A stretch of 64,000 nt of DNA from Paramoeba atlantica (taxonomy: Eukaryota; Protista; Discosea): assembly GCA_977017575.1 (NCBI GenBank), contig CDRNVI010000048.1, positions 255,757 to 319,756 on the forward strand, given 5' to 3'. Each line of letters starts with the position of its first letter. The first letter of the stretch is position 1. The translations under genes and the position numbers were made by a program. The notes below the pieces were generated by a model. That model ran no database searches. It had not been told where the DNA came from and saw only the letters and a program-made list of their open reading frames with translations. This document shows positions 13,042 through 45,398 of this stretch, in pieces.

Positions 13042-13092
13042 AAAAGAGCTGGGCCCCGAGAGAATACTGCGTAAAAAAATTTCAACAAGGTA

Positions 13093-13128
13093 CAACAAGG
13101 TACAGAAACTGTATCTTTATCGTTAAAG
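13093..13128 (-). other. Retroposed spliced-leader exon, with extra 10-nt SL 3' fragment at 13083-13092
   Basis: CTTTAACGATAAAGATACAGTTTCTGTACCTTGTTG followed by TACCTTGTTG and the A 5' UTR; no GT donor follows. Confidence 0.8.
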
Positions 13129-13487
13129 TTTACTCCAAGTTTTTCCAACGGAGGAGGCTGAGCTATGTTGGGAATGTTCTTCTGAAACCAATCGCATTTC
13201 TGGAAATTAATTCGGAGGTTCATCTCTGCGGCGATCTCACGCAGGTAAAAGAAAGCTGCCTCCAATGCTTGCACGTTTTTGGAGCTCAAAGTCACATCGT
13301 CTTGGTATGCTCGGATCTTCACGTCAGGATAGAGGTGCATGAGTTCTCGTAGCGGGCCTTGCAAAAGTGCGCAGAAGTACATTGATGAAAGTGCCGATCC
13401 TTGGCGAATTCCTGAAGAGCTTTCGATGGTAGCAAACAGAGCATTGTGCGCAAAAAATAGCAGCTCAGAGGGAATCCCATATTCTAG
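13125..13487 (-). pseudogene. 363-bp duplicate of the family X RT fragment
   Basis: Matches 8263-8625 and joins the SL through 4-nt AAAG microhomology. Confidence 0.93.
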
Positions 13488-14043
13488 TTTTTTTTTTTTT
13501 TTTTTTGCAGATAATAGGGGGGGAAGAGTACGAGTTCTAATTTTATATATGTATGTACGGTATGACTTTCTCACTTACTTTCCTACTTGCTCAACTTCTT
13601 TCCCTCACTTCCCCCCATTTTGAAAACCAGCAAAATATATAACTAGCAAATACATGCTTTCCCATCTTACCCACTTCCCCTTACCAATCTTACCAGCTTT
13701 CCAGGGAGGGTAAGGTCTCCCTCGGTTAGGAGGGGCAGACTTTTCCCGAACCATTCGCGCGTTCCGGACCGGGTCTTTCGACCTCTCCCAGCTTGCCTTG
13801 TTAACCCTTCTCTTGTTGTACGAGAGGGCGCAAGCAATGGGCCTGTGCCGACAGCGGCACGGTCGCGGAGCATGATGCTGGCCGACGGGGAGGAACAAAG
13901 TTCCCTACCCATGTCCTACCTCACTTGGAGTACCTAGCCCTGGCGGACTAGGCGTGAGCATAGACCCTGCCGGCATCGACCAGCATCCGGACCAGCTGTT
14001 CGGGTTCCGGCTGAGCGGCCCATCTTGCACATCCGTCATCGTG

Positions 14044-17903: not shown

Positions 17904-17954
17904 AAAAGAGCTGGGCCCCGAGAGAATACTGCGTAAAAAAATTTCAACAAGGTA

Positions 17955-17990
17955 CAACAAGGTACAGAAACTGTATCTTTATCGTTAAAG
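17955..17990 (-). other. Retroposed SL exon (plus 10-nt fragment 17945-17954)
   Basis: Same sequence as 13083-13128. Confidence 0.8.

Positions 17991-18347: not shown

Positions 18348-18349
<2 letters not shown>
17987..18349 (-). pseudogene. Third copy of the 363-bp X RT fragment
   Basis: Same boundaries as the other two copies, followed by an extra G, T33 and the family B tail. Confidence 0.93.
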
Positions 18350-18385
<36 letters not shown>

Positions 18386-18642
18386 AATTAATAAGGGGGG
18401 AGAAGTATGAATCGCGGCATTGCCTCTATATTTTGACCCAGTAGACGAACCAAGTAGGTCCATTGGGGGGGGGGGGTATACGAATTGAAAACAAACAATC
18501 AAATTAGCAATTCTTTTTCTGTCCACAGATGTACCTTTTTTCTCAGCCCAAAACTAGCAATTTAGTCTCCCCTAAGTATATACTACAAACAAGAAAAACA
18601 GTAAAAATTAGTAAAAATTAAAACAAGCAATCCATGCCCAAT

Positions 18643-18875
18643 CCATTCGCGCGTTCCGGACCGGGTCTTTCGACCTCTCCACGGCCTGACTTGTGAACCC
18701 TTCCCTTGTTATATGGGAGGGCGCAGGCGCGGGCCTGTGTCGACAGCGACACGGTCGCGAAACAGGATGCTGGCCGACGGGGAGGAGATTCACTGCCCGT
18801 GTACTACCTCACTTGGGGTACCTAGCCCTCGCGAGCTAGGCGTGAGTATAGACTCTGTCGACGCGACCAGCACCC
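18643..18875 (-). ncRNA. Conserved structured RNA element in the 3' UTR (representative copy)
   Basis: Homologous blocks at ~8889, 13751, 22847, 23454, 27954, 32147, 36541 (partial), 36972, 41423, 45539 (partial) and in G UTRs (~46495, 53756, 61019). Compensatory changes in at least four helices; a GNRA loop on the sense strand. Confidence 0.8.
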
Positions 18876-18914
18876 TAATCGTCTTGTTACCCTAGAGGAC
18901 CATGCCTGTGGGCC

Positions 18915-21900
18915 CTACTCCCCTTCCAGGGGAGCTTGGGGGTCACTGACGACTATCCGGGAGACCATCATGCGGGCCTGAGAGCGCATGAGTGTGACGT
19001 TAAGCTCTTTCAGAAGGTCATTTCGGGCTTGAGCATCCGTGAGAAGACCTTTTGACGAGTTGGCGCGCAGTGCTCCCACCTTCCATAAGACCGCCATTGC
19101 GCTTTTACTCCACGAGCCAAAAGACTCGACAACCATGGCCGTGAACCCTAGTTGTGCTTCTTCTGCTTCTTGACGTTGTTTTTCCTTCGTTTCTGAGTAA
19201 TGCTCGGCGAAAGACCCTGCAGCCACCCAGCTAGCATTCCGGACAGAGTCCAAATACTTTGTTTGCTGTGCGTGGGTGACTGCGAAGTCTAGTACCATGC
19301 CTTTCCCTAGAGTGTACGTGGGGAGGAAAACGTCAGCCGGTCTGGTGAGACCCCCTCCTGGCCCCCGATTTCCTAGACTTTTTTCTCGCTGGGGAGCCAT
19401 GTTGGCCTTGCTGCAAAAGGAGGCGAATTCTACACAAAGCGCATTGTGCCGCGTGATGAGGCCATGTCCGTTCTTGCACAATAATGCATGCTCCCCATTT
19501 TTCTGTAGGGGTAGGGAACACCCGTTTGCTGTGCAGGGGCGGTCTTGGCCATAAATGTCCATGCCAAACCACCAGCGCGATAACGTGCGGAACTCGGTTG
19601 GTGTGAAAGCAAAACCTTTACTCCTTGAGGGCGTGACGAAGGCCCAGCTCCCAGCTCCCTTTCCTGACTGTGAAACCCATCGTGCTCGGGTGCGGGGGTC
19701 GGCCTGGCCGTAGGCTGTAGTGAATTCCTGCTGCGATATGGCTTGGCTCAGTTGCTGCTGCCGGGGTATAACCATTTCCGGCTCGGCCGTCTTATCCGCG
19801 TCCATGTTGTTGAGTATGTGTCGTGGGCGTTTGCTTCTCGAGGTGAGGTTGTGTCTTTGGCTGGACTCTGGATGTGGTTTATTCTGTTTCGGGATGCGTC
19901 CTGTACCGGGATCCACAAGTTCTACCCCCGCCTTTCTATTCACGTCCTGCACGGAAATGGTGAATCCCTCGGCTTCTGAAGGGTCCCAATCGTCTGCATC
20001 GGCGGCGTGCGCAACGGAGGAGACATATGCTGCTGTTGCGTGGAGGAGAGAAGACCTGAGACCAAAACCCCCGTTGCGCTTCTTACGTTGGATTTGGTCA
20101 CGCGCGTGGGAATCCAGAAGGAAAAGTGCCCATTCCGCGGCTTTTAGAACATTTTCATCAAGGGAATTACAAAGCTCAGAAAGCGCATGAGGGGGTGTCG
20201 TGCGAAGTGCGTAGACCATTTGACAGAATCCAGTGCACTGCCGGATGAGGGACATGGCTACTTGTGGGTCTCCTATGAAACCTATTGCGTCTAATGTTTC
20301 GCGTGCGGGCTCAATGGCTTCTGACCTGAGAAACTCCACGCAATGCTCCGCTGACCCAATCGGGGAGCCCAAGATGTCGAAATTTCCATCAGTACGAGTT
20401 TTAGTCTTCGGTATCTCTGGAAATAATCCTGTGAGATGGGATGAAGCAGGCGGTGTTATTATCTCACATTTCGATGGGTTTAGGAAAAGTCCGCATCGGG
20501 AGCCAACATTGGAAAAAACATCGAGCGCCTTCCTGACCTCCTCAGCCTCCCCTATGAGTACCCCGTCATCTAGGTACCAAAGTTGAGTGTCTAGATTCGA
20601 CCGAGACGATATTTCTTCTGTTACACTGGATAGTACTAGAGAGAAGAGAAGAGGGCCTAGTGGGTCTCCTTGTTGTACCCCCTCTGCCGAGGGTATGACA
20701 TTGTCTCTGTAGGTAAGACAGCTCACGTTGGAGTAACACCACTCTACCCAAGGTGAGAGTTCGGGGAAATTTAAGCGCGTGGTTAGGGTGAGAACAGGCC
20801 TGCTGACGTTATTGAAAGCGTTTCTTAAGTCCACTTTGCAGAAGACAAAATTGTCACTCCCCAGGTTATTGAGCATGGCTCTCCGGCAGAGGTGGATAAC
20901 TCGTTCGGCTCCCGCGGGGGCTGCTACACCATATTGTCGCCCGTTGAACAGAGTACCCGCTTTCTCCTTTATCGAGATACATGCCGCCTTGCTTACGAGG
21001 CGTCTAAGGGTTTCACCCGCTGCGATTGGTCGAACATCGTCCTCGCCTTTTTCCAGGGCGCAGAGCCGGGCTCCAGCGTAGAATGATTGGACGTCTTGTG
21101 GCGCTTTTCCTTGAAGCATGTGGTTCACTAGTCGCGTGAGGGCCGAGAGAGGATTCACATCCTTGTCCACATGTTCCAAGATGGCTGCCTGGAGGTGCTC
21201 TGGACGAAGGCCCATCGTGCCGGCTGAAGATCCCCTGCGGAAGCTGACGATCGCTTTTTTGACCTCTGTTTCCTCTAGGTGTAGGGGGTTGCCCTCGATC
21301 GGTGGTAGATCATTCTGCAAGGGATTTTCGTGTGGGTCTGGATGCTTCTCCAAGAGCTTTTCGAGGGTATCTGCATTGTCTGGCGCCATGGGGGCTGCGG
21401 TTAGGGCTGCCATTCCCCTGGAAAATTCCCCCTGGCGGGCCAAGAGTTCGGCTCGAATTGCCGCTCTGTCTGCATCGATTTCGGAGTCGCGTGATCTGGA
21501 GCGCTTTTTATAATGATCCCTCTGGGCATCTTCCCATAGCAAGAGGTACTCCCCCGCTAGCCACAGTTTCATGCGGTTTTCGACGTACGTAGAGTATGAT
21601 GTGTGGCCTTTGCGACCGCCTCGGAAAGGTGCTGGTAGGACACACTTAGGGAGCATTGCGAGAAGTGTCCATGCCTCTACCGTGTTTTCCTTCACTGCGG
21701 ATGTCAAGGATTGCGTGAGGATGCTCGCCCAGAGGAATCTGCAACAGTGTGGAACGTCTTTGCAGGTACTCATGGGAAGTGCGCAGATGGAGCCGAGTGA
21801 TGGCAAATTGTCTGTTGGATTTTCTTCTGCGTTTTGGGGACGTGCCGTTGGTGGGGCTAATGACCGTCCGGAATTGTTGCGGCCCCTGCAGTTTTTGGGG

Positions 21901-22505
21901 TGAGACTTGAGCTTGTTCTTGGCGTAGTGTCTGCCACAATCTCTGCAGAGGAATCTTCCCTCTCCCTCCCACCACTCGTTTGGAATGTTTTTGCCGTGTC
22001 GATGAGCTACATGGTGATAAAATGCCTGCCATTTTCCGCTATGTGGTGGGGTTTTCCACGTACATCCTTCTGCTGGGCATTGACGTTCTACATCCTTCTG
22101 CTGCGTATTGGCGTTGTGGTATGTGGTAGGGGCAGAATCAGTATTCTTGCGCTTTGTAGCCTTAGTTGGAGAGAAAATGTGGGCGGATGAGGCCTCCGAA
22201 GTAATTCCCACGTTGTTTGCCACGACAAGGGAGTGATTTGTCTCTTCGTCCGCGGTCATTCTGCCTGTGTCCGGTGTAGGTTCCTCTGCCGCGATCTTGT
22301 AGGCTCTTTCGGTCCAGTGTTTAGGTACGTTTTCGGGGATAGGTGTCGTATACAAAAGTTCATTGTAGGTGCTTTGGCCGGAAATCAGGTGAGCGTTTCC
22401 TGCGAATTGGTCCCAATCTCCGGGTTTGTGTGACATTTGTTCCTGGCGAAAAGAGTCATCATCCATTGGTAACGCGTTGGCATCAAAGGAATCATCGGGC
22501 GGCAT
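18915..22505 (-). CDS. Family B polyprotein (ZnF-RT-CCHC-RLE), 1196 aa
   Basis: Uninterrupted ORF with RPIAAGETLRRL, GVQQGDPLGPL, WYLDDG, CTANGC..H...C and PAD..LDF..ESFG. Confidence 0.95.
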   Translation of the reverse strand: MPPDDSFDANALPMDDDSFRQEQMSHKPGDWDQFAGNAHLISGQSTYNELLYTTPIPENVPKHWTERAYKIAAEEPTPDTGRMTADEETNHSLVVANNVGITSEASSAHIFSPTKATKRKNTDSAPTTYHNANTQQKDVERQCPAEGCTWKTPPHSGKWQAFYHHVAHRHGKNIPNEWWEGEGRFLCRDCGRHYAKNKLKSHPKNCRGRNNSGRSLAPPTARPQNAEENPTDNLPSLGSICALPMSTCKDVPHCCRFLWASILTQSLTSAVKENTVEAWTLLAMLPKCVLPAPFRGGRKGHTSYSTYVENRMKLWLAGEYLLLWEDAQRDHYKKRSRSRDSEIDADRAAIRAELLARQGEFSRGMAALTAAPMAPDNADTLEKLLEKHPDPHENPLQNDLPPIEGNPLHLEETEVKKAIVSFRRGSSAGTMGLRPEHLQAAILEHVDKDVNPLSALTRLVNHMLQGKAPQDVQSFYAGARLCALEKGEDDVRPIAAGETLRRLVSKAACISIKEKAGTLFNGRQYGVAAPAGAERVIHLCRRAMLNNLGSDNFVFCKVDLRNAFNNVSRPVLTLTTRLNFPELSPWVEWCYSNVSCLTYRDNVIPSAEGVQQGDPLGPLLFSLVLSSVTEEISSRSNLDTQLWYLDDGVLIGEAEEVRKALDVFSNVGSRCGLFLNPSKCEIITPPASSHLTGLFPEIPKTKTRTDGNFDILGSPIGSAEHCVEFLRSEAIEPARETLDAIGFIGDPQVAMSLIRQCTGFCQMVYALRTTPPHALSELCNSLDENVLKAAEWALFLLDSHARDQIQRKKRNGGFGLRSSLLHATAAYVSSVAHAADADDWDPSEAEGFTISVQDVNRKAGVELVDPGTGRIPKQNKPHPESSQRHNLTSRSKRPRHILNNMDADKTAEPEMVIPRQQQLSQAISQQEFTTAYGQADPRTRARWVSQSGKGAGSWAFVTPSRSKGFAFTPTEFRTLSRWWFGMDIYGQDRPCTANGCSLPLQKNGEHALLCKNGHGLITRHNALCVEFASFCSKANMAPQREKSLGNRGPGGGLTRPADVFLPTYTLGKGMVLDFAVTHAQQTKYLDSVRNASWVAAGSFAEHYSETKEKQRQEAEEAQLGFTAMVVESFGSWSKSAMAVLWKVGALRANSSKGLLTDAQARNDLLKELNVTLMRSQARMMVSRIVVSDPQAPLEGE

Positions 22506-22547
22506 GGTGCGACCCTAGTAAGCAATAAAGAGAAAGAAAAATTAATT

Positions 22548-22580
22548 CAACAAGGTACAGAAACTGTATCTTTATCGTTA

Positions 22581-22583
<3 letters not shown>
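22548..22583 (-). other. Retroposed SL exon
   Basis: 36-nt SL joined directly to the B 5' UTR (AATTAATT...); the next base is T, consistent with a longer SL 5' end. Confidence 0.82.
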
Positions 22584-22584
<1 letters not shown>

Positions 22585-22614
<30 letters not shown>

Positions 22615-23172
22615 GCGAAAATGCATACAGTTCATACACGTACATAATTATTAACAAACCCTATTCAAATATAATCCCTCCTGAATTTCAATCCGTAAAC
22701 TTTTAATCTTTTTTTTTATTTTTATTAAACAAGCAATCAAATTAGCAATTTCACATGTTGTAGCCCAAAACTAGTAATTCAACCTGCCTTAAGTTATTTA
22801 TGATTTTGATAACAATAATAATAAAAAGAAGCAATTTATGCCCAATTCATTCGCGCGTTCCGGACCGGGTCTTTCGACCACTCCTCGGCCTGACTTGTGA
22901 ACCCTTCCCTTGTTATATGGGAGGGCGCAGGCGCGGGCTTGTGCCGACAGCGGCACGGTCGCGAAACAGGGTGCTGGCCGACGGGGAGGAAGTTTTAGTT
23001 CCCGACCCATGTCCTACCTCACTTGGAGTACCTAGCCCTTGAGGGCTAGGCGTGAGCATAGACCCTGCCGGCATCGACCAGCATCCAGGCCAGCCATCTA
23101 TGAGGGCGCAAACGTGGGTCTGTGCTGACTGCCGTCCGGTCAGGAAACGTTTACTCCCCCAAGCAAGAAAAA
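22585..23172 (-). mobile_element. 3' UTR-only module of another family (H), 5'-truncated
   Basis: T28, a distinct AT-rich tail, and a variant of the structured block (~22847-23085); cut by the next poly-T at 23173. Confidence 0.8.
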
Positions 23173-23737
23173 GTTTTTTTTTTTTTTTTTTTTGCAATTA
23201 ATAAGGGGGGAGAAGTATGAATCGCGGCATTGCCTCTATAATTTGATCCAGTAGACGAACCAAGTACATAGTAGGTCCATTAGGGGGGTATATGAATTTA
23301 AAACAAGCAATCAAATTAGCAATTCTTTTCATTTCCACAGAAGTATATTTTCTTTTTCTTTTTTCTCAGCCCAAAACTAGCAATTCAATCTCCCCTAAGT
23401 ATATACGACAAATAAGACACAGTAAAAATAAAAACAAGCAATCCAGACCCAATCCATTCGCGCGTTCCGGACCGGGTCTTTCGACCACTCCACGGCCTGA
23501 CTTGTGAACCCTTCCCTTGCTATACGGGAGGGCGCAGGCGCGGGCCTGTGTCGACAGCGACACGGTCACGAAACAGGATGCTGGCCGACGGGGAGGAGAT
23601 TCACTACCCGTGTACTACCTCACTTGGGGTACCTAGCCCTCGCGGGCTAGGCGTGAGCATAGTCTCTGTCGACCCGGCCAGCACCCGCCCTGGATATTAT
23701 GGCGTCTTCGTGCTGAAACTGGACTGTCAGTAGAGGC

Positions 23738-27533: not shown

Positions 27534-27579
27534 GAGAAAGAACCGCGTACCTGGAAAAGATGAAATAAAGAAAATAATT

Positions 27580-27619
27580 CAACAAGGTACAGAAACTGTA
27601 TCTTTATCGTTAAAGAGTC
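27580..27619 (-). other. Longest retroposed SL: G + ACTCTTTAACGATAAAGATACAGTTTCTGTACCTTGTTG (39 nt)
   Basis: The + strand reads ...cgttaaagagtc then T26. 39 nt matches the kinetoplastid SL length; the extra G may be a copied cap. Confidence 0.7.
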
Positions 27620-27755: not shown

Positions 27756-27786
<31 letters not shown>

Positions 27787-28225
27787 GGGGGGGGGGGTAT
27801 ACGAATTGAAAACAAACAATCAAATTAGCAATTCTTTTTCTGTCCACAGATGTACCTTTTTTCTCAGCCCAAAACTAGCAATTTAGTCTCCCCTAAGTAT
27901 ATACTACAAACAAGAAAAACAGTAAAAATTAAAACAAGCAATCCATGCCCAATCCATTCGCGCGTTCCGGACCGGGTCTTTCGACCTCTCCACGGCCTGA
28001 CTTGTGAACCCTTCCCTTGTTATATGGGAGGGCGCAGGCGCGGGCCTGTGTCGACAGCGACACGGTCGCGAAACAGGATGCTGGCCGACGGGGAGGAGAT
28101 TCACTGCCCGTGTACTACCTCACTTGGGGTACCTAGCCCTCGCGAGCTAGGCGTGAGTATAGACTCTGTCGACGCGACCAGCACCCTAATCGTCTTGTTA
28201 CCCTAGAGGACCATGCCTGTGGGCC

Positions 28226-31816: not shown

Positions 31817-31858
31817 GGTGCGACCCTAGTAAGCAATAAAGAGAAAGAAAAATTAATT

Positions 31859-31894
31859 CAACAAGGTACAGAAACTGTATCTTTATCGTTAAAG
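31859..31894 (-). other. Retroposed SL exon
   Basis: 36-nt SL abutting T24. Confidence 0.82.
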
Positions 31895-32430
31895 TTTTTT
31901 TTTTTTTTTTTTTTTTTTGGCATTGCCTCTATATTTTGACCCAGTAGACGAACCAAGTACATAGTAGGTCCATTAGGGGGGTATATGAATTTAAAACAAG
32001 CAATCAAATTAGCAATTCTTTTTATTTCCACAGAAGTATATTTTCTTTTTCTTTTTTCTCAGCCCAAAACTAGCAATTTAATCTCCCCTAAGTATATACG
32101 ACAAACAAGACACAGTAAAAATAAAAACAAGCAATCCAGACCCAATCCATTCGCGCGTTCCGGACCGGGTCTTTCGACCACTCCACGGCCTGACTTGTGA
32201 ACCCTTCCCTTGTTATGTGGGAGGGCGCAGGCGCGGGCCTGTGTCGACAGCGACACGGTCGCGAAACAGGATGCTGGCCGACGGGGAGGAGATTCACTAC
32301 CCGTGTACTACCTCACTTGGGGTACCTAGCCCTCGCGGGCTAGGCGTGAGCATAGTCTCTGTCGACCCGGCCAGCACCCGTCCTGGATATTATGGCGTCT
32401 TCGTGCTGAAACTGGACTGTCAGTAGAGGC

Positions 32431-35400: not shown

Positions 35401-36231
35401 AGGCTGCTGTGGTTGTGAGGGCGGCTGCGAGGAGGGTGGTGTAGATTGCATTTTACAATGATTCAAATGAGAAGTTTTCTTGCTAATATCGTAATGACGA
35501 CCGCATGCGTCGCAGAGAAATCGTCCTTCCTTTGTCCACCAGTCATTGGGTATGTTATTTCCGTGTCGGTAAGCAACGTGGTTGTAGTACGACTGCCATT
35601 GACCTCCATGGGCACGAGTTTTCCAAATACAGTTTTCTGCGGGGCACTCCCTTTGTGTCGGACGGTTTTGGGAAGATGGAAACGTGAGAACTGCTTCGCT
35701 CGTCGAAGGTGGGATTTCAAGGGAAGTTCCTTGTACTATTTGGCGTGGAGAGTTGTTTTCGGGGTTATGTTCCGTCGCTTCCCCCTTTCGAGGTGTAGCT
35801 GGTTCGCGCGCTTTTCGATGAGACTTTACGATTCCCCGATTCCCTTTGACGCTTGGGGGTGTGGAAGATGGTTGGCATCGAGTAAACTTTTTAGTGATAG
35901 TGTTGCTATCAGATTGCGTTTTTTGGTGTCCATGATGTAATCTGATGACTCGTGAGTGGTTTGTTTCCTCATCGCTACTATCTACCTGTCCCGTATCACG
36001 TGTCTGGTTCTCAGTTGAGATCAAGGCGGCGTTCATGTTCCATTCTTCCGGAATGTTCGCAGGAATAGGGGTCGTGTAGAGCAATTCGTTGTACGTACTC
36101 CGTTGCTTAATGAGATGTGCGTTTCCAGCAAACTGGTCCCAGGATCCTCTATTGTGTACTGCTTCCTCTTGTAAAAATGAATCGTCGTCCATCGGCGGAG
36201 GTGAGGCTTTGAGAAGATCGTTTTCAGACAT
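32431..36231 (-). CDS. Family C polyprotein (ZnF-RT-CCHC-RLE), 1266 aa
   Basis: Uninterrupted ORF with all RT and RLE motifs. Confidence 0.95.
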   Translation of the reverse strand: MSENDLLKASPPPMDDDSFLQEEAVHNRGSWDQFAGNAHLIKQRSTYNELLYTTPIPANIPEEWNMNAALISTENQTRDTGQVDSSDEETNHSRVIRLHHGHQKTQSDSNTITKKFTRCQPSSTPPSVKGNRGIVKSHRKAREPATPRKGEATEHNPENNSPRQIVQGTSLEIPPSTSEAVLTFPSSQNRPTQRECPAENCIWKTRAHGGQWQSYYNHVAYRHGNNIPNDWWTKEGRFLCDACGRHYDISKKTSHLNHCKMQSTPPSSQPPSQPQQPSQLSESGEAMYDIQGTHSLPSLEEVCTTQISTCKDVPHRCRYLWTRIFTAALSTAVNENSLRAWTLLALLPKCVLPAPYRGGRKAHKSYTSYISKRMELWIQGQYTTLWAQANSEHDRKRSKVPNNEIEGEEDKAAIRAEILVRQGEFSRGMAALTAAPLAPYSEETLLKLQEKHPSPHGNPISCPLPPLEEEALKLDESEVRKAVDTFRRGSSAGTMGLRPEHLQTALQEHVDQNMNPLTTLTSFVNHLLAGKAPDEVQPFFAGARLCALEKGEDDVRPIAAGETLRRLVSKAVCLSIKEKAGSFFGRRQYGVAASAGAERVIHLCRRLMRNNEENENITFCKVDLRNAFNNVSRPVFIFLTRKHFPELSPWVEWCYANHSCLTFGNDFIPSAEGVQQGDPLGPLLFSLVLAEVTEEIASNSNLRTQLWYLDDGVLVGEPKEVRKALDVLDEIGPKWGLFLNLSKCEIITPPASAHTSVFFPDIPSDKIRYDGNFDILGSPIGSAEHCAEFLMTHAIEPARETLEATAVLEDPQIALALIRQCSGFCQMVYALRTTPPQALGELCQKLDSHLVQAVEHAISPLGVAASDQIQRPKRHGGFGLRSSILHQSAAYVSSVAHAASLDNWDPTEAEGFSSSAHDINDKVGTDLVDPYTGRITKPSVPGEYHANRSILSRPAKRKLAQSLNHALLPVSTDQEKIIPRQKHLSQAISDREFQTAYSKADARTRARWISQSGKGAGNWAFATPSKTRGYAFTHTEFRTLTRWWLGMDVFPEDRPCPADGCTLPLLKNGEHALLCKNGHGIISRHNALAQQFTSFCSRAFLAPQREKSLGNRGPGGALTRPADVFLPTASIAKGSLAQGMVLDFAVTHAQQTKYLDSVHNASWVTPGSFAEHFAETKARQRQEAEKAGHLFTAMVVESFGSWSESALALLRDIGTQRANASKGLLSRDQARNDLLTDLNVTLMRSQARMMVSRIRVEDPADPLVEA

Positions 36232-36277
36232 GAGAAAGAACCGCGTACCTGGAAAAGATGAAATAAAGAAAATAATT

Positions 36278-36313
36278 CAACAAGGTACAGAAACTGTATC
36301 TTTATCGTTAAAG
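36278..36313 (-). other. Retroposed SL exon
   Basis: 36-nt SL joined to the C 5' UTR (AATTATTTT...). Confidence 0.82.
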
Positions 36314-36700: not shown

Positions 36701-37243
36701 TTTTTTTTTTTTTTTTTTTTTTTGCAATTAATAAGGGGGGAGAAGTATGAATCGCGGCATTGCCTCTATATTTTGACCCAGTAGACGAACCAAGTAGGTC
36801 CATTGGGGGGGGGGGTATACGAATTGAAAACAAACAATCAAATTAGCAATTCTTTTTCTGTCCACAGATGTACCTTTTTTCTCAGCCCAAAACTAGCAAT
36901 TTAGTCTCCCCTAAGTATATACTACAAACAAGAAAAACAGTAAAAATTAAAACAAGCAATCCATGCCCAATCCATTCGCGCGTTCCGGACCGGGTCTTTC
37001 GACCTCTCCACGGCCTGACTTGTGAACCCTTCCCTTGTTATATGGGAGGGCGCAGGCGCGGGCCTGTGTCGACAGCGACACGGTCGCGAAACAGGATGCT
37101 GGCCGACGGGGAGGAGATTCACTGCCCGTGTACTACCTCACTTGGGGTACCTAGCCCTCGCGAGCTAGGCGTGAGTATAGACTCTGTCGACGCGACCAGC
37201 ACCCTAATCGTCTTGTTACCCTAGAGGACCATGCCTGTGGGCC

Positions 37244-40200
37244 CTACTCCCCTTCCAGGGGAGCTTGGGGGTCACTGACGACTATCCGGGAGACCATCAT
37301 GCGGGCCTGAGAGCGCATGAGTGTGACGTTAAGCTCTTTCAGAAGGTCATTTCGGGCTTGAGCATCCGTGAGAAGACCTTTTGACGAGTTGGCGCGCAGT
37401 GCTCCCACCTTCCATAAGACCGCCATTGCGCTTTTACTCCACGAGCCAAAAGACTCGACAACCATGGCCGTGAACCCTAGTTGTGCTTCTTCTGCTTCTT
37501 GACGTTGTTTTTCCTTCGTTTCTGAGTAATGCTCGGCGAAAGACCCTGCAGCCACCCAGCTAGCATTCCGGACAGAGTCCAAATACTTTGTTTGCTGTGC
37601 GTGGGTGACTGCGAAGTCTAGTACCATGCCTTTCCCTAGAGTGTACGTGGGGAGGAAAACGTCAGCCGGTCTGGTGAGACCCCCTCCTGGCCCCCGATTT
37701 CCTAGACTTTTTTCTCGCTGGGGAGCCATGTTGGCCTTGCTGCAAAAGGAGGCGAATTCTACACAAAGCGCATTGTGCCGCGTGATGAGGCCATGTCCGT
37801 TCTTGCACAATAATGCATGCTCCCCATTTTTCTGTAGGGGTAGGGAACACCCGTTTGCTGTGCAGGGGCGGTCTTGGCCATAAATGTCCATGCCAAACCA
37901 CCAGCGCGATAACGTGCGGAACTCGGTTGGTGTGAAAGCAAAACCTTTACTCCTTGAGGGCGTGACGAAGGCCCAGCTCCCAGCTCCCTTTCCTGACTGT
38001 GAAACCCATCGTGCTCGGGTGCGGGGGTCGGCCTGGCCGTAGGCTGTAGTGAATTCCTGCTGCGATATGGCTTGGCTCAGTTGCTGCTGCCGGGGTATAA
38101 CCATTTCCGGCTCGGCCGTCTTATCCGCGTCCATGTTGTTGAGTATGTGTCGTGGGCGTTTGCTTCTCGAGGTGAGGTTGTGTCTTTGGCTGGACTCTGG
38201 ATGTGGTTTATTCTGTTTCGGGATGCGTCCTGTACCGGGATCCACAAGTTCTACCCCCGCCTTTCTATTCACGTCCTGCACGGAAATGGTGAATCCCTCG
38301 GCTTCTGAAGGGTCCCAATCGTCTGCATCGGCGGCGTGCGCAACGGAGGAGACATATGCTGCTGTTGCGTGGAGGAGAGAAGACCTGAGACCAAAACCCC
38401 CGTTGCGCTTCTTACGTTGGATTTGGTCACGCGCGTGGGAATCCAGAGGGAAAAGTGCCCATTCCGCGGCTTTTAGAACATTTTCATCAAGGGAATTACA
38501 AAGCTCAGAAAGCGCCTGAGGGGGTGTCGTGCGAAGTGCGTAGACCATTTGACAGAATCCAGTGCACTGCCGGATGAGGGACATGGCTACTTGTGGGTCT
38601 CCTATGAAACCTATTGCGTCTAATGTTTCGCGTGCGGGCTCAATGGCTTCTGACCTGAGAAACTCCACGCAATGCTCCGCTGACCCAATCGGGGAGCCCA
38701 AGATGTCGAAATTTCCATCAGTACGAGTTTTAGTCTTCGGTATCTCTGGAAATAATCCTGTGAGATGGGATGAAGCAGGCGGTGTTATTATCTCACATTT
38801 CGATGGGTTTAGGAAAAGTCCGCATCGGGAGCCAACATTGGAAAAAACATCGAGCGCCTTCCTGACCTCCTCAGCCTCCCCTATGAGTACCCCGTCATCT
38901 AGGTACCAAAGTTGAGTGTCTAGATTCGACCGAGACGATATTTCTTCTGTTACACTGGATAGTACTAGAGAGAAGAGAAGAGGGCCTAGTGGGTCTCCTT
39001 GTTGTACCCCCTCTGCCGAGGGTATGACATTGTCTCTGTAGGTAAGACAGCTCACGTTGGAGTAACACCACTCTACCCAAGGTGAGAGTTCGGGGAAATT
39101 TAAGCGCGTGGTTAGGGTGAGAACAGGCCTGCTGACGTTATTGAAAGCGTTTCTTAAGTCCACTTTGCAGAAGACAAAATTGTCACTCCCCAGGTTATTG
39201 AGCATGGCTCTCCGGCAGAGGTGGATAACTCGTTCGGCTCCCGCGGGGGCTGCTACACCATATTGTCGCCCGTTGAACAGAGTACCCGCTTTCTCCTTTA
39301 TCGAGATACATGCCGCCTTGCTTACGAGGCGTCTAAGGGTTTCACCCGCTGCGATTGGTCGAACATCGTCCTCGCCTTTTTCCAGGGCGCAGAGCCGGGC
39401 TCCAGCGTAGAATGATTGGACGTCTTGTGGCGCTTTTCCTTGAAGCATGTGGTTCACTAGTCGCGTGAGGGCCGAGAGAGGATTCACATCCTTGTCCACA
39501 TGTTCCAAGATGGCTGCCTGGAGGTGCTCTGGACGAAGGCCCATCGTGCCGGCTGAAGATCCCCTGCGGAAGCTGACGATCGCTTTTTTGACCTCTGTTT
39601 CCTCTAGGTGTAGGGGGTTGCCCTCGATCGGTGGTAGATCATTCTGCAAGGGATTTTCGTGTGGGTCTGGATGCTTCTCCAAGAGCTTTTCGAGGGTATC
39701 TGCATTGTCTGGCGCCATGGGGGCTGCGGTTAGGGCTGCCATTCCCCTGGAAAATTCCCCCTGGCGGGCCAAGAGTTCGGCTCGAATTGCCGCTCTGTCT
39801 GCATCGATTTCGGAGTCGCGTGATCTGGAGCGCTTTTTATAATGATCCCTCTGGGCATCTTCCCATAGCAAGAGGTACTCCCCCGCTAGCCACAGTTTCA
39901 TGCGGTTTTCGACGTACGTAGAGTATGATGTGTGGCCTTTGCGACCGCCTCGGAAAGGTGCTGGTAGGACACACTTAGGGAGCATTGCGAGAAGTGTCCA
40001 TGCCTCTACCGTGTTTTCCTTCACTGCGGATGTCAAGGATTGCGTGAGGATGCTCGCCCAGAGGAATCTGCAACAGTGTGGAACGTCTTTGCAGGTACTC
40101 ATGGGAAGTGCGCAGATGGAGCCGAGTGATGGCAAATTGTCTGTTGGATTTTCTTCTGCGTTTTGGGGACGTGCCGTTGGTGGGGCTAATGACCGTCCGG

Positions 40201-40834
40201 AATTGTTGCGGCCCCTGCAGTTTTTGGGGTGAGACTTGAGCTTGTTCTTGGCGTAGTGTCTGCCACAATCTCTGCAGAGGAATCTTCCCTCTCCCTCCCA
40301 CCACTCGTTTGGAATGTTTTTGCCGTGTCGATGAGCTACATGGTGATAAAATGCCTGCCATTTTCCGCTATGTGGTGGGGTTTTCCACGTACATCCTTCT
40401 GCTGGGCATTGACGTTCTACATCCTTCTGCTGCGTATTGGCGTTGTGGTATGTGGTAGGGGCAGAATCAGTATTCTTGCGCTTTGTAGCCTTAGTTGGAG
40501 AGAAAATGTGGGCGGATGAGGCCTCCGAAGTAATTCCCACGTTGTTTGCCACGACAAGGGAGTGATTTGTCTCTTCGTCCGCGGTCATTCTGCCTGTGTC
40601 CGGTGTAGGTTCCTCTGCCGCGATCTTGTAGGCTCTTTCGGTCCAGTGTTTAGGTACGTTTTCGGGGATAGGTGTCGTATACAAAAGTTCATTGTAGGTG
40701 CTTTGGCCGGAAATCAGGTGAGCGTTTCCTGCGAATTGGTCCCAATCTCCGGGTTTGTGTGACATTTGTTCCTGGCGAAAAGAGTCATCATCCATTGGTA
40801 ACGCGTTGGCATCAAAGGAATCATCGGGCGGCAT
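37244..40834 (-). CDS. Family B polyprotein, 1196 aa
   Basis: Intact ORF. Confidence 0.95.
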   Translation of the reverse strand: MPPDDSFDANALPMDDDSFRQEQMSHKPGDWDQFAGNAHLISGQSTYNELLYTTPIPENVPKHWTERAYKIAAEEPTPDTGRMTADEETNHSLVVANNVGITSEASSAHIFSPTKATKRKNTDSAPTTYHNANTQQKDVERQCPAEGCTWKTPPHSGKWQAFYHHVAHRHGKNIPNEWWEGEGRFLCRDCGRHYAKNKLKSHPKNCRGRNNSGRSLAPPTARPQNAEENPTDNLPSLGSICALPMSTCKDVPHCCRFLWASILTQSLTSAVKENTVEAWTLLAMLPKCVLPAPFRGGRKGHTSYSTYVENRMKLWLAGEYLLLWEDAQRDHYKKRSRSRDSEIDADRAAIRAELLARQGEFSRGMAALTAAPMAPDNADTLEKLLEKHPDPHENPLQNDLPPIEGNPLHLEETEVKKAIVSFRRGSSAGTMGLRPEHLQAAILEHVDKDVNPLSALTRLVNHMLQGKAPQDVQSFYAGARLCALEKGEDDVRPIAAGETLRRLVSKAACISIKEKAGTLFNGRQYGVAAPAGAERVIHLCRRAMLNNLGSDNFVFCKVDLRNAFNNVSRPVLTLTTRLNFPELSPWVEWCYSNVSCLTYRDNVIPSAEGVQQGDPLGPLLFSLVLSSVTEEISSRSNLDTQLWYLDDGVLIGEAEEVRKALDVFSNVGSRCGLFLNPSKCEIITPPASSHLTGLFPEIPKTKTRTDGNFDILGSPIGSAEHCVEFLRSEAIEPARETLDAIGFIGDPQVAMSLIRQCTGFCQMVYALRTTPPQALSELCNSLDENVLKAAEWALFPLDSHARDQIQRKKRNGGFGLRSSLLHATAAYVSSVAHAADADDWDPSEAEGFTISVQDVNRKAGVELVDPGTGRIPKQNKPHPESSQRHNLTSRSKRPRHILNNMDADKTAEPEMVIPRQQQLSQAISQQEFTTAYGQADPRTRARWVSQSGKGAGSWAFVTPSRSKGFAFTPTEFRTLSRWWFGMDIYGQDRPCTANGCSLPLQKNGEHALLCKNGHGLITRHNALCVEFASFCSKANMAPQREKSLGNRGPGGGLTRPADVFLPTYTLGKGMVLDFAVTHAQQTKYLDSVRNASWVAAGSFAEHYSETKEKQRQEAEEAQLGFTAMVVESFGSWSKSAMAVLWKVGALRANSSKGLLTDAQARNDLLKELNVTLMRSQARMMVSRIVVSDPQAPLEGE

Positions 40835-40876
40835 GGTGCGACCCTAGTAAGCAATAAAGAGAAAGAAAAATTAATT

Positions 40877-40907
40877 CAACAAGGTACAGAAACTGTATCT
40901 TTATCGT

Positions 40908-40909
<2 letters not shown>
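40877..40909 (-). other. Retroposed SL exon, 5'-shortened
   Basis: TAACGATAAAGATACAGTTTCTGTACCTTGTTG. Confidence 0.8.
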
Positions 40910-40911
<2 letters not shown>

Positions 40912-40938
<27 letters not shown>

Positions 40939-41144: not shown

Positions 41145-41694
41145 TTTTTTTTTTTTTTTTTGCAGCCGTCTTTTGCAATTAATAAGGGGGGAGAAGTATG
41201 AATCGCGGCATTGCCTCTATATTTTGACCCAGTAGACGAACCAAGTAGGTCCATTGGGGGGGGGGGTATACGAATTGAAAACAAACAATCAAATTAGCAA
41301 TTCTTTTTCTGTCCACAGATGTACCTTTTTTCTCAGCCCAAAACTAGCAATTTAGTCTCCCCTAAGTATATACTACAAACAAGAAAAACAGTAAAAATTA
41401 AAACAAGCAATCCATGCCCAATCCATTCGCGCGTTCCGGACCGGGTCTTTCGACCACTCCACGGCCTGACTTGTGAACCCTTCCCTTGTTATATGGGAGG
41501 GCGCAGGCGCGGGCCTGTGTCGACAGCGACACGGTCGCGAAACAGGATGCTGGCCGACGGGGAGGAGATTCACTGCCCGTGTACTACCTCACTTGGGGTA
41601 CCTAGCCCTCGCGAGCTAGGCGTGAGTATAGACTCTGTCGACGCGACCAGCACCCTAATCGTCTTGTTACCCTAGAGGACCATGCCTGTGGGCC

Positions 41695-44600
41695 CTACTC
41701 CCCTTCCAGGGGAGCTTGGGGGTCACTGACGACTATCCGGGAGACCATCATGCGGGCCTGAGAGCGCATGAGTGTGACGTTAAGCTCTTTCAGAAGGTCA
41801 TTTCGGGCTTGAGCATCCGTGAGAAGACCTTTTGACGAGTTGGCGCGCAGTGCTCCCACCTTCCATAAGACCGCCATTGCGCTTTTACTCCACGAGCCAA
41901 AAGACTCGACAACCATGGCCGTGAACCCTAGTTGTGCTTCTTCTGCTTCTTGACGTTGTTTTTCCTTCGTTTCTGAGTAATGCTCGGCGAAAGACCCTGC
42001 AGCCACCCAGCTAGCATTCCGGACAGAGTCCAAATACTTTGTTTGCTGTGCGTGGGTGACTGCGAAGTCTAGTACCATGCCTTTCCCTAGAGTGTACGTG
42101 GGGAGGAAAACGTCAGCCGGTCTGGTGAGACCCCCTCCTGGCCCCCGATTTCCTAGACTTTTTTCTCGCTGGGGAGCCATGTTGGCCTTGCTGCAAAAGG
42201 AGGCGAATTCTACACAAAGCGCATTGTGCCGCGTGATGAGGCCATGTCCGTTCTTGCACAATAATGCATGCTCCCCATTTTTCTGTAGGGGTAGGGAACA
42301 CCCGTTTGCTGTGCAGGGGCGGTCTTGGCCATAAATGTCCATGCCAAACCACCAGCGCGATAACGTGCGGAACTCGGTTGGTGTGAAAGCAAAACCTTTA
42401 CTCCTTGAGGGCGTGACGAAGGCCCAGCTCCCAGCTCCCTTTCCTGACTGTGAAACCCATCGTGCTCGGGTGCGGGGGTCGGCCTGGCCGTAGGCTGTAG
42501 TGAATTCCTGCTGCGATATGGCTTGGCTCAGTTGCTGCTGCCGGGGTATAACCATTTCCGGCTCGGCCGTCTTATCCGCGTCCATGTTGTTGAGTATGTG
42601 TCGTGGGCGTTTGCTTCTCGAGGTGAGGTTGTGTCTTTGGCTGGACTCTGGATGTGGTTTATTCTGTTTCGGGATGCGTCCTGTACCGGGATCCACAAGT
42701 TCTACCCCCGCCTTTCTATTCACGTCCTGCACGGAAATGGTGAATCCCTCGGCTTCTGAAGGGTCCCAATCGTCTGCATCGGCGGCGTGCGCAACGGAGG
42801 AGACATATGCTGCTGTTGCGTGGAGGAGAGAAGACCTGAGACCAAAACCCCCGTTGCGCTTCTTACGTTGGATTTGGTCACGCGCGTGGGAATCCAGAGG
42901 GAAAAGTGCCCATTCCGCGGCTTTTAGAACATTTTCATCAAGGGAATTACAAAGCTCAGAAAGCGCCTGAGGGGGTGTCGTGCGAAGTGCGTAGACCATT
43001 TGACAGAATCCAGTGCACTGCCGGATGAGGGACATGGCTACTTGTGGGTCTCCTATGAAACCTATTGCGTCTAATGTTTCGCGTGCGGGCTCAATGGCTT
43101 CTGACCTGAGAAACTCCACGCAATGCTCCGCTGACCCAATCGGGGAGCCCAAGATGTCGAAATTTCCATCAGTACGAGTTTTAGTCTTCGGTATCTCTGG
43201 AAATAATCCTGTGAGATGGGATGAAGCAGGCGGTGTTATTATCTCACATTTCGATGGGTTTAGGAAAAGTCCGCATCGGGAGCCAACATTGGAAAAAACA
43301 TCGAGCGCCTTCCTGACCTCCTCAGCCTCCCCTATGAGTACCCCGTCATCTAGGTACCAAAGTTGAGTGTCTAGATTCGACCGAGACGATATTTCTTCTG
43401 TTACACTGGATAGTACTAGAGAGAAGAGAAGAGGGCCTAGTGGGTCTCCTTGTTGTACCCCCTCTGCCGAGGGTATGACATTGTCTCTGTAGGTAAGACA
43501 GCTCACGTTGGAGTAACACCACTCTACCCAAGGTGAGAGTTCGGGGAAATTTAAGCGCGTGGTTAGGGTGAGAACAGGCCTGCTGACGTTATTGAAAGCG
43601 TTTCTTAAGTCCACTTTGCAGAAGACAAAATTGTCACTCCCCAGGTTATTGAGCATGGCTCTCCGGCAGAGGTGGATAACTCGTTCGGCTCCCGCGGGGG
43701 CTGCTACACCATATTGTCGCCCGTTGAACAGAGTACCCGCTTTCTCCTTTATCGAGATACATGCCGCCTTGCTTACGAGGCGTCTAAGGGTTTCACCCGC
43801 TGCGATTGGTCGAACATCGTCCTCGCCTTTTTCCAGGGCGCAGAGCCGGGCTCCAGCGTAGAATGATTGGACGTCTTGTGGCGCTTTTCCTTGAAGCATG
43901 TGGTTCACTAGTCGCGTGAGGGCCGAGAGAGGATTCACATCCTTGTCCACATGTTCCAAGATGGCTGCCTGGAGGTGCTCTGGACGAAGGCCCATTGTGC
44001 CGGCTGAAGATCCCCTGCGGAAGCTGACGATCGCTTTTTTGACCTCTGTTTCCTCTAGGTGTAGGGGGTTGCCCTCGATCGGTGGTAGATCATTCTGCAA
44101 GGGATTTTCGTGTGGGTCTGGATGCTTCTCCAAGAGCTTTTCGAGGGTATCTGCATTGTCTGGCGCCATGGGGGCTGCGGTTAGGGCTGCCATTCCCCTG
44201 GAAAATTCCCCCTGGCGGGCCAAGAGTTCGGCTCGAATTGCCGCTCTGTCTGCATCGATTTCGGAGTCGCGTGATCTGGAGCGCTTTTTATAATGATCCC
44301 TCTGGGCATCTTCCCATAGCAAGAGGTACTCCCCCGCTAGCCACAGTTTCATGCGGTTTTCGACGTACGTAGAGTATGATGTGTGGCCTTTGCGACCGCC
44401 TCGGAAAGGTGCTGGTAGGACACACTTAGGGAGCATTGCGAGAAGTGTCCATGCCTCTACCGTGTTTTCCTTCACTGCGGATGTCAAGGATTGCGTGAGG
44501 ATGCTCGCCCAGAGGAATCTGCAACAGTGTGGAACGTCTTTGCAGGTACTCATGGGAAGTGCGCAGATGGAGCCGAGTGATGGCAAATTGTCTGTTGGAT

Positions 44601-45285
44601 TTTCTTCTGCGTTTTGGGGACGTGCCGTTGGTGGGGCTAATGACCGTCCGGAATTGTTGCGGCCCCTGCAGTTTTTGGGGTGAGACTTGAGCTTGTTCTT
44701 GGCGTAGTGTCTGCCACAATCTCTGCAGAGGAATCTTCCCTCTCCCTCCCACCACTCGTTTGGAATGTTTTTGCCGTGTCGATGAGCTACATGGTGATAA
44801 AATGCCTGCCATTTTCCGCTATGTGGTGGGGTTTTCCACGTACATCCTTCTGCTGGGCATTGACGTTCTACATCCTTCTGCTGCGTATTGGCGTTGTGGT
44901 ATGTGGTAGGGGCAGAATCAGTATTCTTGCGCTTTGTAGCCTTAGTTGGAGAGAAAATGTGGGCGGATGAGGCCTCCGAAGTAATTCCCACGTTGTTTGC
45001 CACGACAAGGGAGTGATTTGTCTCTTCGTCCGCGGTCATTCTGCCTGTGTCCGGTGTAGGTTCCTCTGCCGCGATCTTGTAGGCTCTTTCGGTCCAGTGT
45101 TTAGGTACGTTTTCGGGGATAGGTGTCGTATACAAAAGTTCATTGTAGGTGCTTTGGCCGGAAATCAGGTGAGCGTTTCCTGCGAATTGGTCCCAATCTC
45201 CGGGTTTGTGTGACATTTGTTCCTGGCGAAAAGAGTCATCATCCATTGGTAACGCGTTGGCATCAAAGGAATCATCGGGCGGCAT
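41695..45285 (-). CDS. Family B polyprotein, 1196 aa
   Basis: Intact ORF. Confidence 0.95.
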   Translation of the reverse strand: MPPDDSFDANALPMDDDSFRQEQMSHKPGDWDQFAGNAHLISGQSTYNELLYTTPIPENVPKHWTERAYKIAAEEPTPDTGRMTADEETNHSLVVANNVGITSEASSAHIFSPTKATKRKNTDSAPTTYHNANTQQKDVERQCPAEGCTWKTPPHSGKWQAFYHHVAHRHGKNIPNEWWEGEGRFLCRDCGRHYAKNKLKSHPKNCRGRNNSGRSLAPPTARPQNAEENPTDNLPSLGSICALPMSTCKDVPHCCRFLWASILTQSLTSAVKENTVEAWTLLAMLPKCVLPAPFRGGRKGHTSYSTYVENRMKLWLAGEYLLLWEDAQRDHYKKRSRSRDSEIDADRAAIRAELLARQGEFSRGMAALTAAPMAPDNADTLEKLLEKHPDPHENPLQNDLPPIEGNPLHLEETEVKKAIVSFRRGSSAGTMGLRPEHLQAAILEHVDKDVNPLSALTRLVNHMLQGKAPQDVQSFYAGARLCALEKGEDDVRPIAAGETLRRLVSKAACISIKEKAGTLFNGRQYGVAAPAGAERVIHLCRRAMLNNLGSDNFVFCKVDLRNAFNNVSRPVLTLTTRLNFPELSPWVEWCYSNVSCLTYRDNVIPSAEGVQQGDPLGPLLFSLVLSSVTEEISSRSNLDTQLWYLDDGVLIGEAEEVRKALDVFSNVGSRCGLFLNPSKCEIITPPASSHLTGLFPEIPKTKTRTDGNFDILGSPIGSAEHCVEFLRSEAIEPARETLDAIGFIGDPQVAMSLIRQCTGFCQMVYALRTTPPQALSELCNSLDENVLKAAEWALFPLDSHARDQIQRKKRNGGFGLRSSLLHATAAYVSSVAHAADADDWDPSEAEGFTISVQDVNRKAGVELVDPGTGRIPKQNKPHPESSQRHNLTSRSKRPRHILNNMDADKTAEPEMVIPRQQQLSQAISQQEFTTAYGQADPRTRARWVSQSGKGAGSWAFVTPSRSKGFAFTPTEFRTLSRWWFGMDIYGQDRPCTANGCSLPLQKNGEHALLCKNGHGLITRHNALCVEFASFCSKANMAPQREKSLGNRGPGGGLTRPADVFLPTYTLGKGMVLDFAVTHAQQTKYLDSVRNASWVAAGSFAEHYSETKEKQRQEAEEAQLGFTAMVVESFGSWSKSAMAVLWKVGALRANSSKGLLTDAQARNDLLKELNVTLMRSQARMMVSRIVVSDPQAPLEGE

Positions 45286-45327
45286 GGTGCGACCCTAGTA
45301 AGCAATAAAGAGAAAGAAAAATTAATT

Positions 45328-45383
45328 CAACAAGGTACAGAAACAACAAGGTACAGAAACTGTATCTTTATCGTTAAGAGAGT
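45328..45383 (-). other. Full SL followed by 16-nt relict SL (TTTCTGTACCTTGTTG)
   Basis: The relict begins exactly after the SL's internal CAG. Confidence 0.8.
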
Positions 45384-45398
45384 TTGCGTGCAGCCGTC

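Follow-up and report, generated by a model that had tools for sequence, protein, structure and literature searches.

A retrotransposon array with a common 5′ end

The stretch analyzed here (the window) comprises 64,000 nt of contig CDRNVI010000048.1 from an assembly labeled Paramoeba atlantica. It forms a one-directional head-to-tail chain of approximately 30 segments, each ending in poly(A) and each on the minus strand, and contains no host gene. Eight of these segments are full-length retrotransposons of three families (A, n = 4; B, n = 2; C, n = 2), each of which begins with what appears to be a complete spliced leader (SL) exon (Table 1). “Full-length” describes extent and not integrity, as not all copies are intact: the open reading frame (ORF) of family C is split in two inside the reverse transcriptase (RT) domain, and the B1 ORF is broken near the C terminus.

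A search of the window with a 36-mer of the motif, allowing up to three mismatches and using shuffled sequences as the chance expectation, returned eight matches, all on the minus strand and spaced 4.3 to 5.0 kb apart, with none expected from the shuffles. Their high-coordinate ends lie at 13128, 17990, 22583, 27615, 31894, 36313, 40912, and 45379, and a search with a 13-nt core again recovered 8/8 matches. The 36 nt are exact in six copies; the other two differ within the first 2 to 3 nt only, and 33 nt are common to all. Downstream of each copy come, in this order, a T-rich leader of about 30 nt and a long ORF with an RT domain. These results confirm the original prediction that all full-length copies of the three families share one start, and its statement that no GT donor follows the SL holds for 8/8 window copies. 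Judged by their 5′ junctions, the eight copies represent about seven independent insertion events, since C1 and C2 belong to one duplicated unit and the remaining heads have different 5′ junctions.

Table 1. Coordinates of elements, SL heads, and neighboring fragments in the window
Feature	Position	Strand	Remarks
Element C2	8626..13128	minus	Family C; RT and R2-like endonuclease; ORF split in two; poly(A)
SL head of C2 with 10-nt relic	13083..13128	minus	36-mer 13093-13128; relic of SL 3′ end 13083-13092
RT fragment D, 360 bp	13129..13487	minus	Between poly(A) and C2 head; more copies at 17991-18350 and from 8625 downwards
Element C1	13488..17990	minus	100% identical to C2
SL head of C1 with identical 10-nt relic	17945..17990	minus	Duplicate of C2 unit
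Element A1	18351..22584	minus	1196-aa ORF: LsmAD-like N terminus, Cys/His motifs, RT, CCHC, R2-like endonuclease; then poly(A)
SL head of A1	22548..22584	minus	1 extra T between upstream poly(A) and 36-mer
5′-truncated, poly(A)-ended 3′ fragment without SL (example)	22585..23173	minus
Element B1	23174..27619	minus
SL head of B1	27580..27619	minus	Preceded by GACT
Element A2	27756..31894	minus
SL head of A2	31859..31894	minus	Abuts upstream poly(A) directly
Element B2	31895..36313	minus	1266-aa ORF
SL head of B2	36278..36313	minus	Abuts upstream poly(A) directly
Element A3	36701..40912	minus
SL head of A3	40877..40912	minus	Variant start G-CT-AACG, without CTTT
A4 target-site duplication, 3′ copy, 14 nt	41161..41174	minus
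Element A4	41175..45384	minus	Target-site duplication on both sides
SL head of A4 with 16-nt relic	45328..45384	minus	SL 45344-45384 from AACT; relic 45328-45343 right after internal CAG
A4 target-site duplication, 5′ copy, 14 nt	45389..45402	minus	A-run + GACGGCTGCA
Further 5′-truncated fragments without SL	27620-27755, 36314-36700, 40912-41144	minus	Such fragments also fill 45399-64000

Families A to C are predicted to be R2-superfamily elements

The copies of family A are 99.6 to 100% identical (the bodies of A2 and A3 100%), those of family B 99.4%, and those of family C, as parts of one duplicated unit, 100%. Between families, blastn aligned only the SL (100%), a 240-nt module of the 3′ untranslated region (3′ UTR; 84%), and the last 1.3 kb of A and B (76%).

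The RT domains matched Pfam RVT_1, the invariant C, H, C, H, E, D, and D residues were present in the C-terminal region of the A protein, and the best sequence matches of this protein in the PDB were R2 proteins. An AlphaFold model of its last 277 residues had a predicted local distance difference test score (pLDDT) of 90.9; the top seven Foldseek matches of that model were all R2 retrotransposon structures (E values of 4e-5 to 1.6e-3), followed by PD-(D/E)XK cap-snatching nucleases. Based on these sequence and model comparisons, families A to C are predicted to be R2-superfamily elements with a restriction-like endonuclease (RLE), combining an RT, a CCHC knuckle, and a PD-(D/E)XK nuclease. 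Cys/His motifs are readable in the N-terminal translations of A and B2, with no match to a Pfam zinc-finger model at an E value of ≤0.01. A Diplonema papillatum homologue, 32% identical, bears the automatic annotation SLACS.

The N termini also have a motif in common, WDQF..N.HLI...STY.E.LYTTPIP (ORFs 18915-22505, 32431-36231, and 11242-13098, and L010:4922-9805, a locus described below), which matches the Pfam LsmAD domain of the ataxin-2 type (E = 7e-5 for C; a weak E = 0.007 for A). The presence of this LsmAD-like module and of a homologous leader on the L010 element, a long interspersed nuclear element (LINE) with an apurinic/apyrimidinic endonuclease (APE), RT, and RNase H, implies module exchange between LINE superfamilies.

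The motif resembles euglenozoan spliced leaders

We compared the motif with the SLs of D. papillatum (supplement of PMC10161547) and Perkinsela (PMC5601477) and with the 3′ 15-mer of the Trypanosoma brucei SL (PMC11613528). All three share a ACAGTTTCTGTAC-type core and the terminal TTG with it and differ elsewhere, in agreement with the match to kinetoplastid and diplonemid SL exons that had been predicted. A common core and TTG in an otherwise different SL point to another euglenozoan, neither D. papillatum nor Perkinsela CCAP 1560/4, and by sequence the motif is best read as a genuine SL exon of the kinetoplastid/diplonemid type.

An exact search of JGI metagenome contigs with the 3′ part of the SL plus GT yielded one contig, L015 (Ga0316204_10168667). 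It reads AA plus the 36-mer, followed by the donor GTATGAGAAGC, which we take to be the conserved start of trypanosomatid SL introns, and ends 23 nt into the intron. Within L015:1-570, this SL RNA gene lies on the minus strand (exon 61-24), divergent from a 5S rRNA gene on the plus strand (450-568; Rfam, 98 bits) across a spacer of about 390 bp. Thus, an SL RNA gene with this exon and a GT donor, the absence of which would have spoken against the original prediction, does exist, on a metagenome contig with an unproven species link. The spacer contains two tRNA-like T-loop/B-box motifs in mirror orientation, in which ARAGORN calls no tRNA. A strictly 40-nt SL (AACT followed by CTTT...) was also considered, and is weakened by the L015 gene, which reads AACTTT (38 nt).

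Positions 8000-46500 of the window gave no Rfam match to a ribozyme or an SL RNA gene at the gathering score or at an E value of ≤1, a search that divergent ribozymes could escape, and no intron, Sm site, or promoter remnant was found near the SL copies.

We then examined sequencing reads. An RNA run from 2015 with the same species label had zero depth on family A and on the 3′ UTR module; two contigs, at 1447× and 1180×, covered the SL alone and continued into unlike sequence, and one of these ended in the SL, with a snap-back palindrome. Three further runs, whose library type is not on record, were taken as genomic DNA. In these presumed genomic runs, the SL bin reached a word depth of 16,000 to 34,000, compared with about 150 to 550 for the A body (mostly about 400 in run X1), and most continuations after the SL TTG were T-rich leaders. 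Because SL words outnumber those of the family A body about 80-fold in runs presumed to be genomic, SL heads appear to shape a large part of this repeat-rich genome.

Two side observations concern the same reads. The 3′ UTR module, about 240 nt long (41177-41653 and all family 3′ ends), which is the stretch 84% identical among A, B, and C and ends in a C-run followed by TTATTAATTGC, had a word depth of 20,000 to 35,000 in the presumed genomic runs, matching the abundance of the SL and about 80 times that of the family A body. At 45376, a loose end in runs X1, X4, and X5 corresponds to an 825-nt contig that occurs in both DNA and RNA runs (RNA depth, 1180). This contig reads ...GTACACGG directly before TAACGAT... 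of the SL, which is internal at 292-324, and the joint is neither a canonical start nor a poly(A) junction.

SL heads recur at other loci and on a second type of LINE

Through homologues we reached six further loci of ENA assembly ERZ24900291. They contain 11 more heads from at least five additional families, giving a total of 19 heads from at least eight families. A complete SL exon without its intron stands at the exact 5′ end of the copy in 19/19 heads, and a GT donor follows the SL in 0/19. The last 32 nt of the SL are identical in 19/19 heads (0 mismatches in 608 nt), and the junction with the exon end is exact in 15/19. The first 8 nt or so vary, with AACT, GACT, ACCT, GATA, or GCAG before CTTT, or shorter forms. 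The locus L010 contains an SL-headed LINE with APE (a weak match), RT, and RNase H, whose leader and N-terminal module are common to RLE family B; more than one lineage is therefore SL-headed.

Homologues from further sources were SL free. No SL was found at L004, from a second ENA assembly, or at L002 and L005 to L008, distant homologues from metagenomes and Logan that represent different element types, some with terminal inverted repeats.

In their first 40 nt, the leaders have a mean identity of about 62% between eight families. All (e.g., 22506-22547, 27534-27579, and those of L003 and L009 to L013) begin with A, as AATT, ATTT, or ACTA, and consist of a T-rich part of about 25 to 30 nt and then a (C/A/G)GG-GTAC(G/A)CGG or GGTCGC motif just before the ATG. 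Since an AG closes the T-tract in only about half the families, the tract is unlikely to be just a splice acceptor.

In six heads, the poly(A) is followed immediately by a G that precedes the variable SL start (window 27619 and 40911; L003:2401 and 7151; L011:2218; L013:14884). This G may be a copied 7-methylguanosine (m7G) cap; such cap copying is known from full-length insertions of L1.

The SL comes from the template, and the insertion sites are A-runs

Every SL-headed element has a poly(A), and 6/8 window heads adjoin an upstream poly(A) with 0 to 4 extra nucleotides between. More than 20 further segments of the window align to 3′ parts of A/B/C-like elements; they are 5′ truncated and poly(A) ended, and none has an SL. 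Non-SL segments follow poly(A) tracts as readily as SL heads do. Duplications are invisible within pure A-runs. On each side of A4 lies one copy of a 14-nt duplication made up of four A's and GACGGCTGCA. On the basis of this duplication at an A-run, A4 is read as a classic target-primed reverse transcription event started in an A-run. An isolated copy at L009:8360-12833, situated in an A9 run, has an SL at the 5′ end and nowhere else, and its poly(A) gives way to unrelated DNA.

These observations bear on the notion that the SL copies are target sequence, with elements inserting into SL exons in the manner of CRE and SLACS, or duplicating the exon as a target site, so that an SL would bracket each element. 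The array does place the next SL after each element and in this way mimics a duplication. Against it, the isolated L009 copy has a 5′ SL only, 5′-truncated copies sit between two poly(A) tracts without an SL, the A4 duplication is not SL, and no intron, promoter, or Sm-site remnant accompanies the SL copies. We therefore rejected the SL as a target site or target-site duplication, a reading to which we assign almost no probability, and conclude from the same four lines of evidence that the SL comes from the 5′ end of the template and not from the target. The proposal that the families are SL targeted and that each deposited SL acts as a landing site is likewise not supported: the targets are A-runs and poly(A) tails, with or without a following SL, and halves of an SL gene flank no copy in the 170 kb or so inspected.

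A related scenario retains the SL gene as the source: master copies at the exon/intron border of SL RNA genes would be transcribed from the SL promoter, so that the whole exon would open their RNA, and the window copies would be their off-target progeny. SLACS uses the SL RNA gene promoter. An R2-like endonuclease, a D. papillatum homologue annotated as SLACS-like, and an exact SL/leader junction in most copies fit this scheme, but it is contradicted by the missing SL gene halves, by a documented target that is an A-run with a duplication, and by an SL-headed LINE of the APE type, and it leaves the relics and the alternative junction described below unexplained. We regard it as very unlikely.

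Additional features of the array concern its growth. Its single orientation is explained by priming on the T-strand of earlier poly(A) tails combined with later segmental duplication. The C+D unit of 4862 bp is repeated 2.1 times at 8265-18350; D is joined to both C heads via CTTT/AACTTT microhomology; a third D copy continues without interruption. Six or seven segments make up a 7.26-kb composite that is repeated about 2.5 times at 46236-64000 and whose segment order recurs at L010:13662-14303. One of these segments contains a 307-bp tandem duplication (1.9 copies, 98% identical; 53237-53825 and 60500-61088). The block 41161-40858 is 98% identical to L003:6899-7204, both comprising module F, poly(A), G, an SL without CTTT, and the first 19 leader nucleotides; as the block is joined to different downstream families (A versus F′), recombination or template switching within the leader is suggested. 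A telomeric array was rejected, as the window has no TTAGGG repeats. A SLACS-like element of D. papillatum (L014:1-40; JAPJBO010002721.1) starts right after an A37 run, without an SL, so the family may have head-to-tail insertion into poly(A) in common, including members that lack an SL head.

Relics and an alternative junction point to repeated SL addition

Several heads retain traces of an earlier SL. Behind the SL of A4, its final 16 nt appear a second time, beginning immediately after the internal CAG; in family C, it is the final 10 nt that are repeated, from the position after CTG. A ladder of full SL, 16-nt relic, 10-nt relic, and leader, whose SL pieces would run from newest to oldest in the 5′-to-3′ direction, is present in an unrelated family at L013:3750-3830. 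At L012, the SL is joined to 13 different nucleotides before an F′-type leader that lacks its usual first 4 nt, which makes this an independent junction, and A2 and A3 have different SL starts on identical bodies. Together, these results indicate that SL-headed copies were transcribed, given a new SL, and copied again.

We considered whether the SL could instead have been captured once by an ancestor and since then been copied as DNA via read-through transcripts, with the 5′ end arising from cleavage at the upstream poly(A) site and the identity of the SL maintained by selection, for example, for translation or 5′ integration. That all leaders are homologous and begin with A would fit a single ancestor, composite blocks with internal poly(A) at several loci show that read-through or multiunit templates do get copied, and no AG acceptor precedes the leader. 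Such inheritance is nevertheless difficult to reconcile with an SL that shows 0 substitutions over 32 nt in 19 heads from at least eight families, beside leaders that are about 62% alike, or with siblings whose identical bodies differ in their SL starts, and the relic ladder and the alternative junction require fresh SL addition anyway. We consider this explanation unlikely, albeit the strongest of the alternatives.

Two double heads, at L009:8360-8420 and L013:3750-3790, have a 5′ part of the SL (nt 3-20 or approximately nt 7-25) upstream of a complete SL, joined with 3 extra nucleotides (L009) or via TTT microhomology (L013), and their likely cause is a switch of the RT onto another SL-bearing RNA. 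R2-type RTs jump between templates. This raises the question of whether all heads arose in that way, from an element RNA that starts at the leader and an RT that jumps to the 3′ terminus of a splicing intermediate, the free SL exon, or to another SL-bearing RNA. The double heads demonstrate switching onto the SL, but the switches occur at internal positions with extra or microhomologous nucleotides and not at the exon end, in contrast to the exact exon-end junction of most heads, and a free SL exon is a rare, spliceosome-bound intermediate. Template jumping as the general origin of the heads is accordingly given little more credence than the SL as a target.

A trans-spliced RNA template as the probable source of the SL heads

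The element copies probably derive from trans-spliced, capped RNA templates, with the SL supplied by the template and insertion into A-runs. The element RNAs would be ordinary RNA polymerase II transcripts, probably produced by read-through, which would gain the host SL mini-exon (38 to 40 nt, with its cap) by trans-splicing and would then be polyadenylated. Target-primed reverse transcription would be primed in A-runs, very often those that form the poly(A) tails of earlier copies. When the cDNA is complete, the SL would become the first 36 to 40 nt or so of the new copy; a 5′-truncated cDNA would lack it. A resident SL-headed copy could be transcribed and trans-spliced again: splicing at the internal CAG would leave a 16-nt relic, splicing at CTG a 10-nt relic, and splicing at the terminal TTG no relic, which would account for the majority class. 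We infer that trans-splicing takes place at every generation and that transcription is promoterless read-through; the variable first 8 nt or so would be the footprint of the cap and cap-4 modifications. Of the original claim that host trans-splicing replaces a promoter or ribozyme in defining the 5′ end, a trans-spliced template is thus likely, no ribozyme was detected, and transcription would be promoterless.

The choice of acceptor deserves separate consideration. A conventional acceptor would not be inheritable, because retrocopies lose the outron. TG is used at 26% of the trans-splice sites of Perkinsela, and diplonemids have been noted as another exception (PMC5601477). By analogy with these TG acceptors, and given the TG boundary of the CTG relic, the SL copy's own terminal TTG may be the usual acceptor, so that the junction would be regenerated without a relic. 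A more specific version, which we put forward tentatively and consider somewhat less probable than not, is that a resident SL copy and the A-run before it form a self-renewing trans-splice cassette, in which the A-run provides branch sites, the pyrimidine-rich 3′ half of the SL provides the tract, and (A/T)G, usually the TTG, provides the acceptor. If so, any SL-headed copy located where transcription occurs would acquire a new SL, with its cap-4, at exactly the same junction. LINEs of the RLE and APE types would both possess a heritable 5′ end that needs no promoter, and the cap-proximal modification would be recorded in the variable first 8 nt or so.

Several observations weigh against a trans-spliced template. 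No source copy with an AG acceptor directly before the leader, as the original prediction had led us to look for, was found in about 170 kb, and the majority junction would need a TTG acceptor or another route. Since contigs end at the SL, independent reads did not confirm the relics. No SL-capped element transcripts emerged: the RNA run had no family A coverage, and the T-rich continuation of its SL contigs may be the leader of a transposable element. The SL RNA gene is on a metagenome contig and not demonstrably in this genome, and its exon starts with AACTTT, whereas several heads read AACT-CTTT. Finally, in a cross-species comparison, the two D. papillatum relatives inspected (L001 and L014) have no SL, one element being N-terminally shorter and the other starting with non-SL sequence after the A37 run.

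If copies do derive from trans-spliced templates, the SL head is a natural, genome-wide tag for full-length retrotransposition events, and relic ladders count successive rounds of splicing and retrotransposition. The heads would also offer a view onto the use of non-AG acceptors and the reading of the hypermodified cap-4 region by RT. They would account for the scattered SL fragments in the Diplonema and Perkinsela genomes, and they correct the assumption that SL-associated RLE elements must be specific for SL genes.

Comparison with known systems

Dinoflagellate retrogenes with relic DinoSL sequences, of the type described by Slamovits and Keeling, are well known (reviewed in PMC11453091, PMC5585692, and PMC12014239). 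As in those retrogenes, a trans-spliced mRNA would here have left its SL in the DNA, where the retrocopy has its 5′ end, and renewed splicing inside the resident SL would leave stacked, truncated relics. In dinoflagellates, however, an SL of 22 nt is carried by host genes. Here it is autonomous LINEs that carry an SL, in all full-length copies examined; this SL belongs to the kinetoplastid/diplonemid type, and one relic boundary lies after TG instead of AG.

Euglenozoan genomes have yielded related hints. The D. papillatum genome contains hundreds of scattered SL-exon fragments, for which the authors suspected mRNA retroposition (PMC10161547, supplement). In Perkinsela, 24 SL fragments adjoin retrotransposon sequences and an L1Tc-like transcript with an SL was found, a link left as “worthy of further investigation” (PMC5601477). 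Unlike in these reports, the SL here is the exact 5′ end of full-length elements, and relic ladders, a target-site duplication, and A-run targets are documented.

SLACS, CRE1, CRE2, and CZAR resemble the present elements in their RT and C-terminal RLE, their association with the SL, and their euglenozoan hosts. These SL-gene-specific elements of trypanosomatids sit at a fixed point within the SL exon of SL RNA genes, with a gene half on either side; here, in contrast, a complete exon precedes the element, no gene part follows, and the sites are A-runs.

In our literature search, which was incomplete, we found no paper on autonomous LINE families with systematically SL-headed full-length genomic copies, and a full-text search for the exact SL sequence returned no paper. 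SL heads are a real and little-documented route by which a mobile element obtains its 5′ end.

LINEs must rebuild a defined, translatable 5′ end in each generation, and the known answers are internal promoters, 5′ ribozymes, and neighbor promoters, exemplified by the 5′ ribozymes of the hepatitis delta virus (HDV) type in R2 and L1Tc, the Pr77 internal promoter (PMC1874656, PMC3185411), and the neighbor promoter of HeT-A. The elements described here face the same problem as R2, L1Tc, and HeT-A, a defined translatable 5′ end without an upstream promoter of their own. The head-to-tail arrays resemble those of HeT-A and TART, albeit with no telomere repeats. Unlike for R2 and L1Tc, no ribozyme was detected, and whereas L1Tc transcripts have been reported to be unspliced, the 5′ end here is the host SL. 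Whole LINE superfamilies in a euglenozoan appear to delegate their 5′ end to host trans-splicing, with each full-length copy as a DNA record of it.

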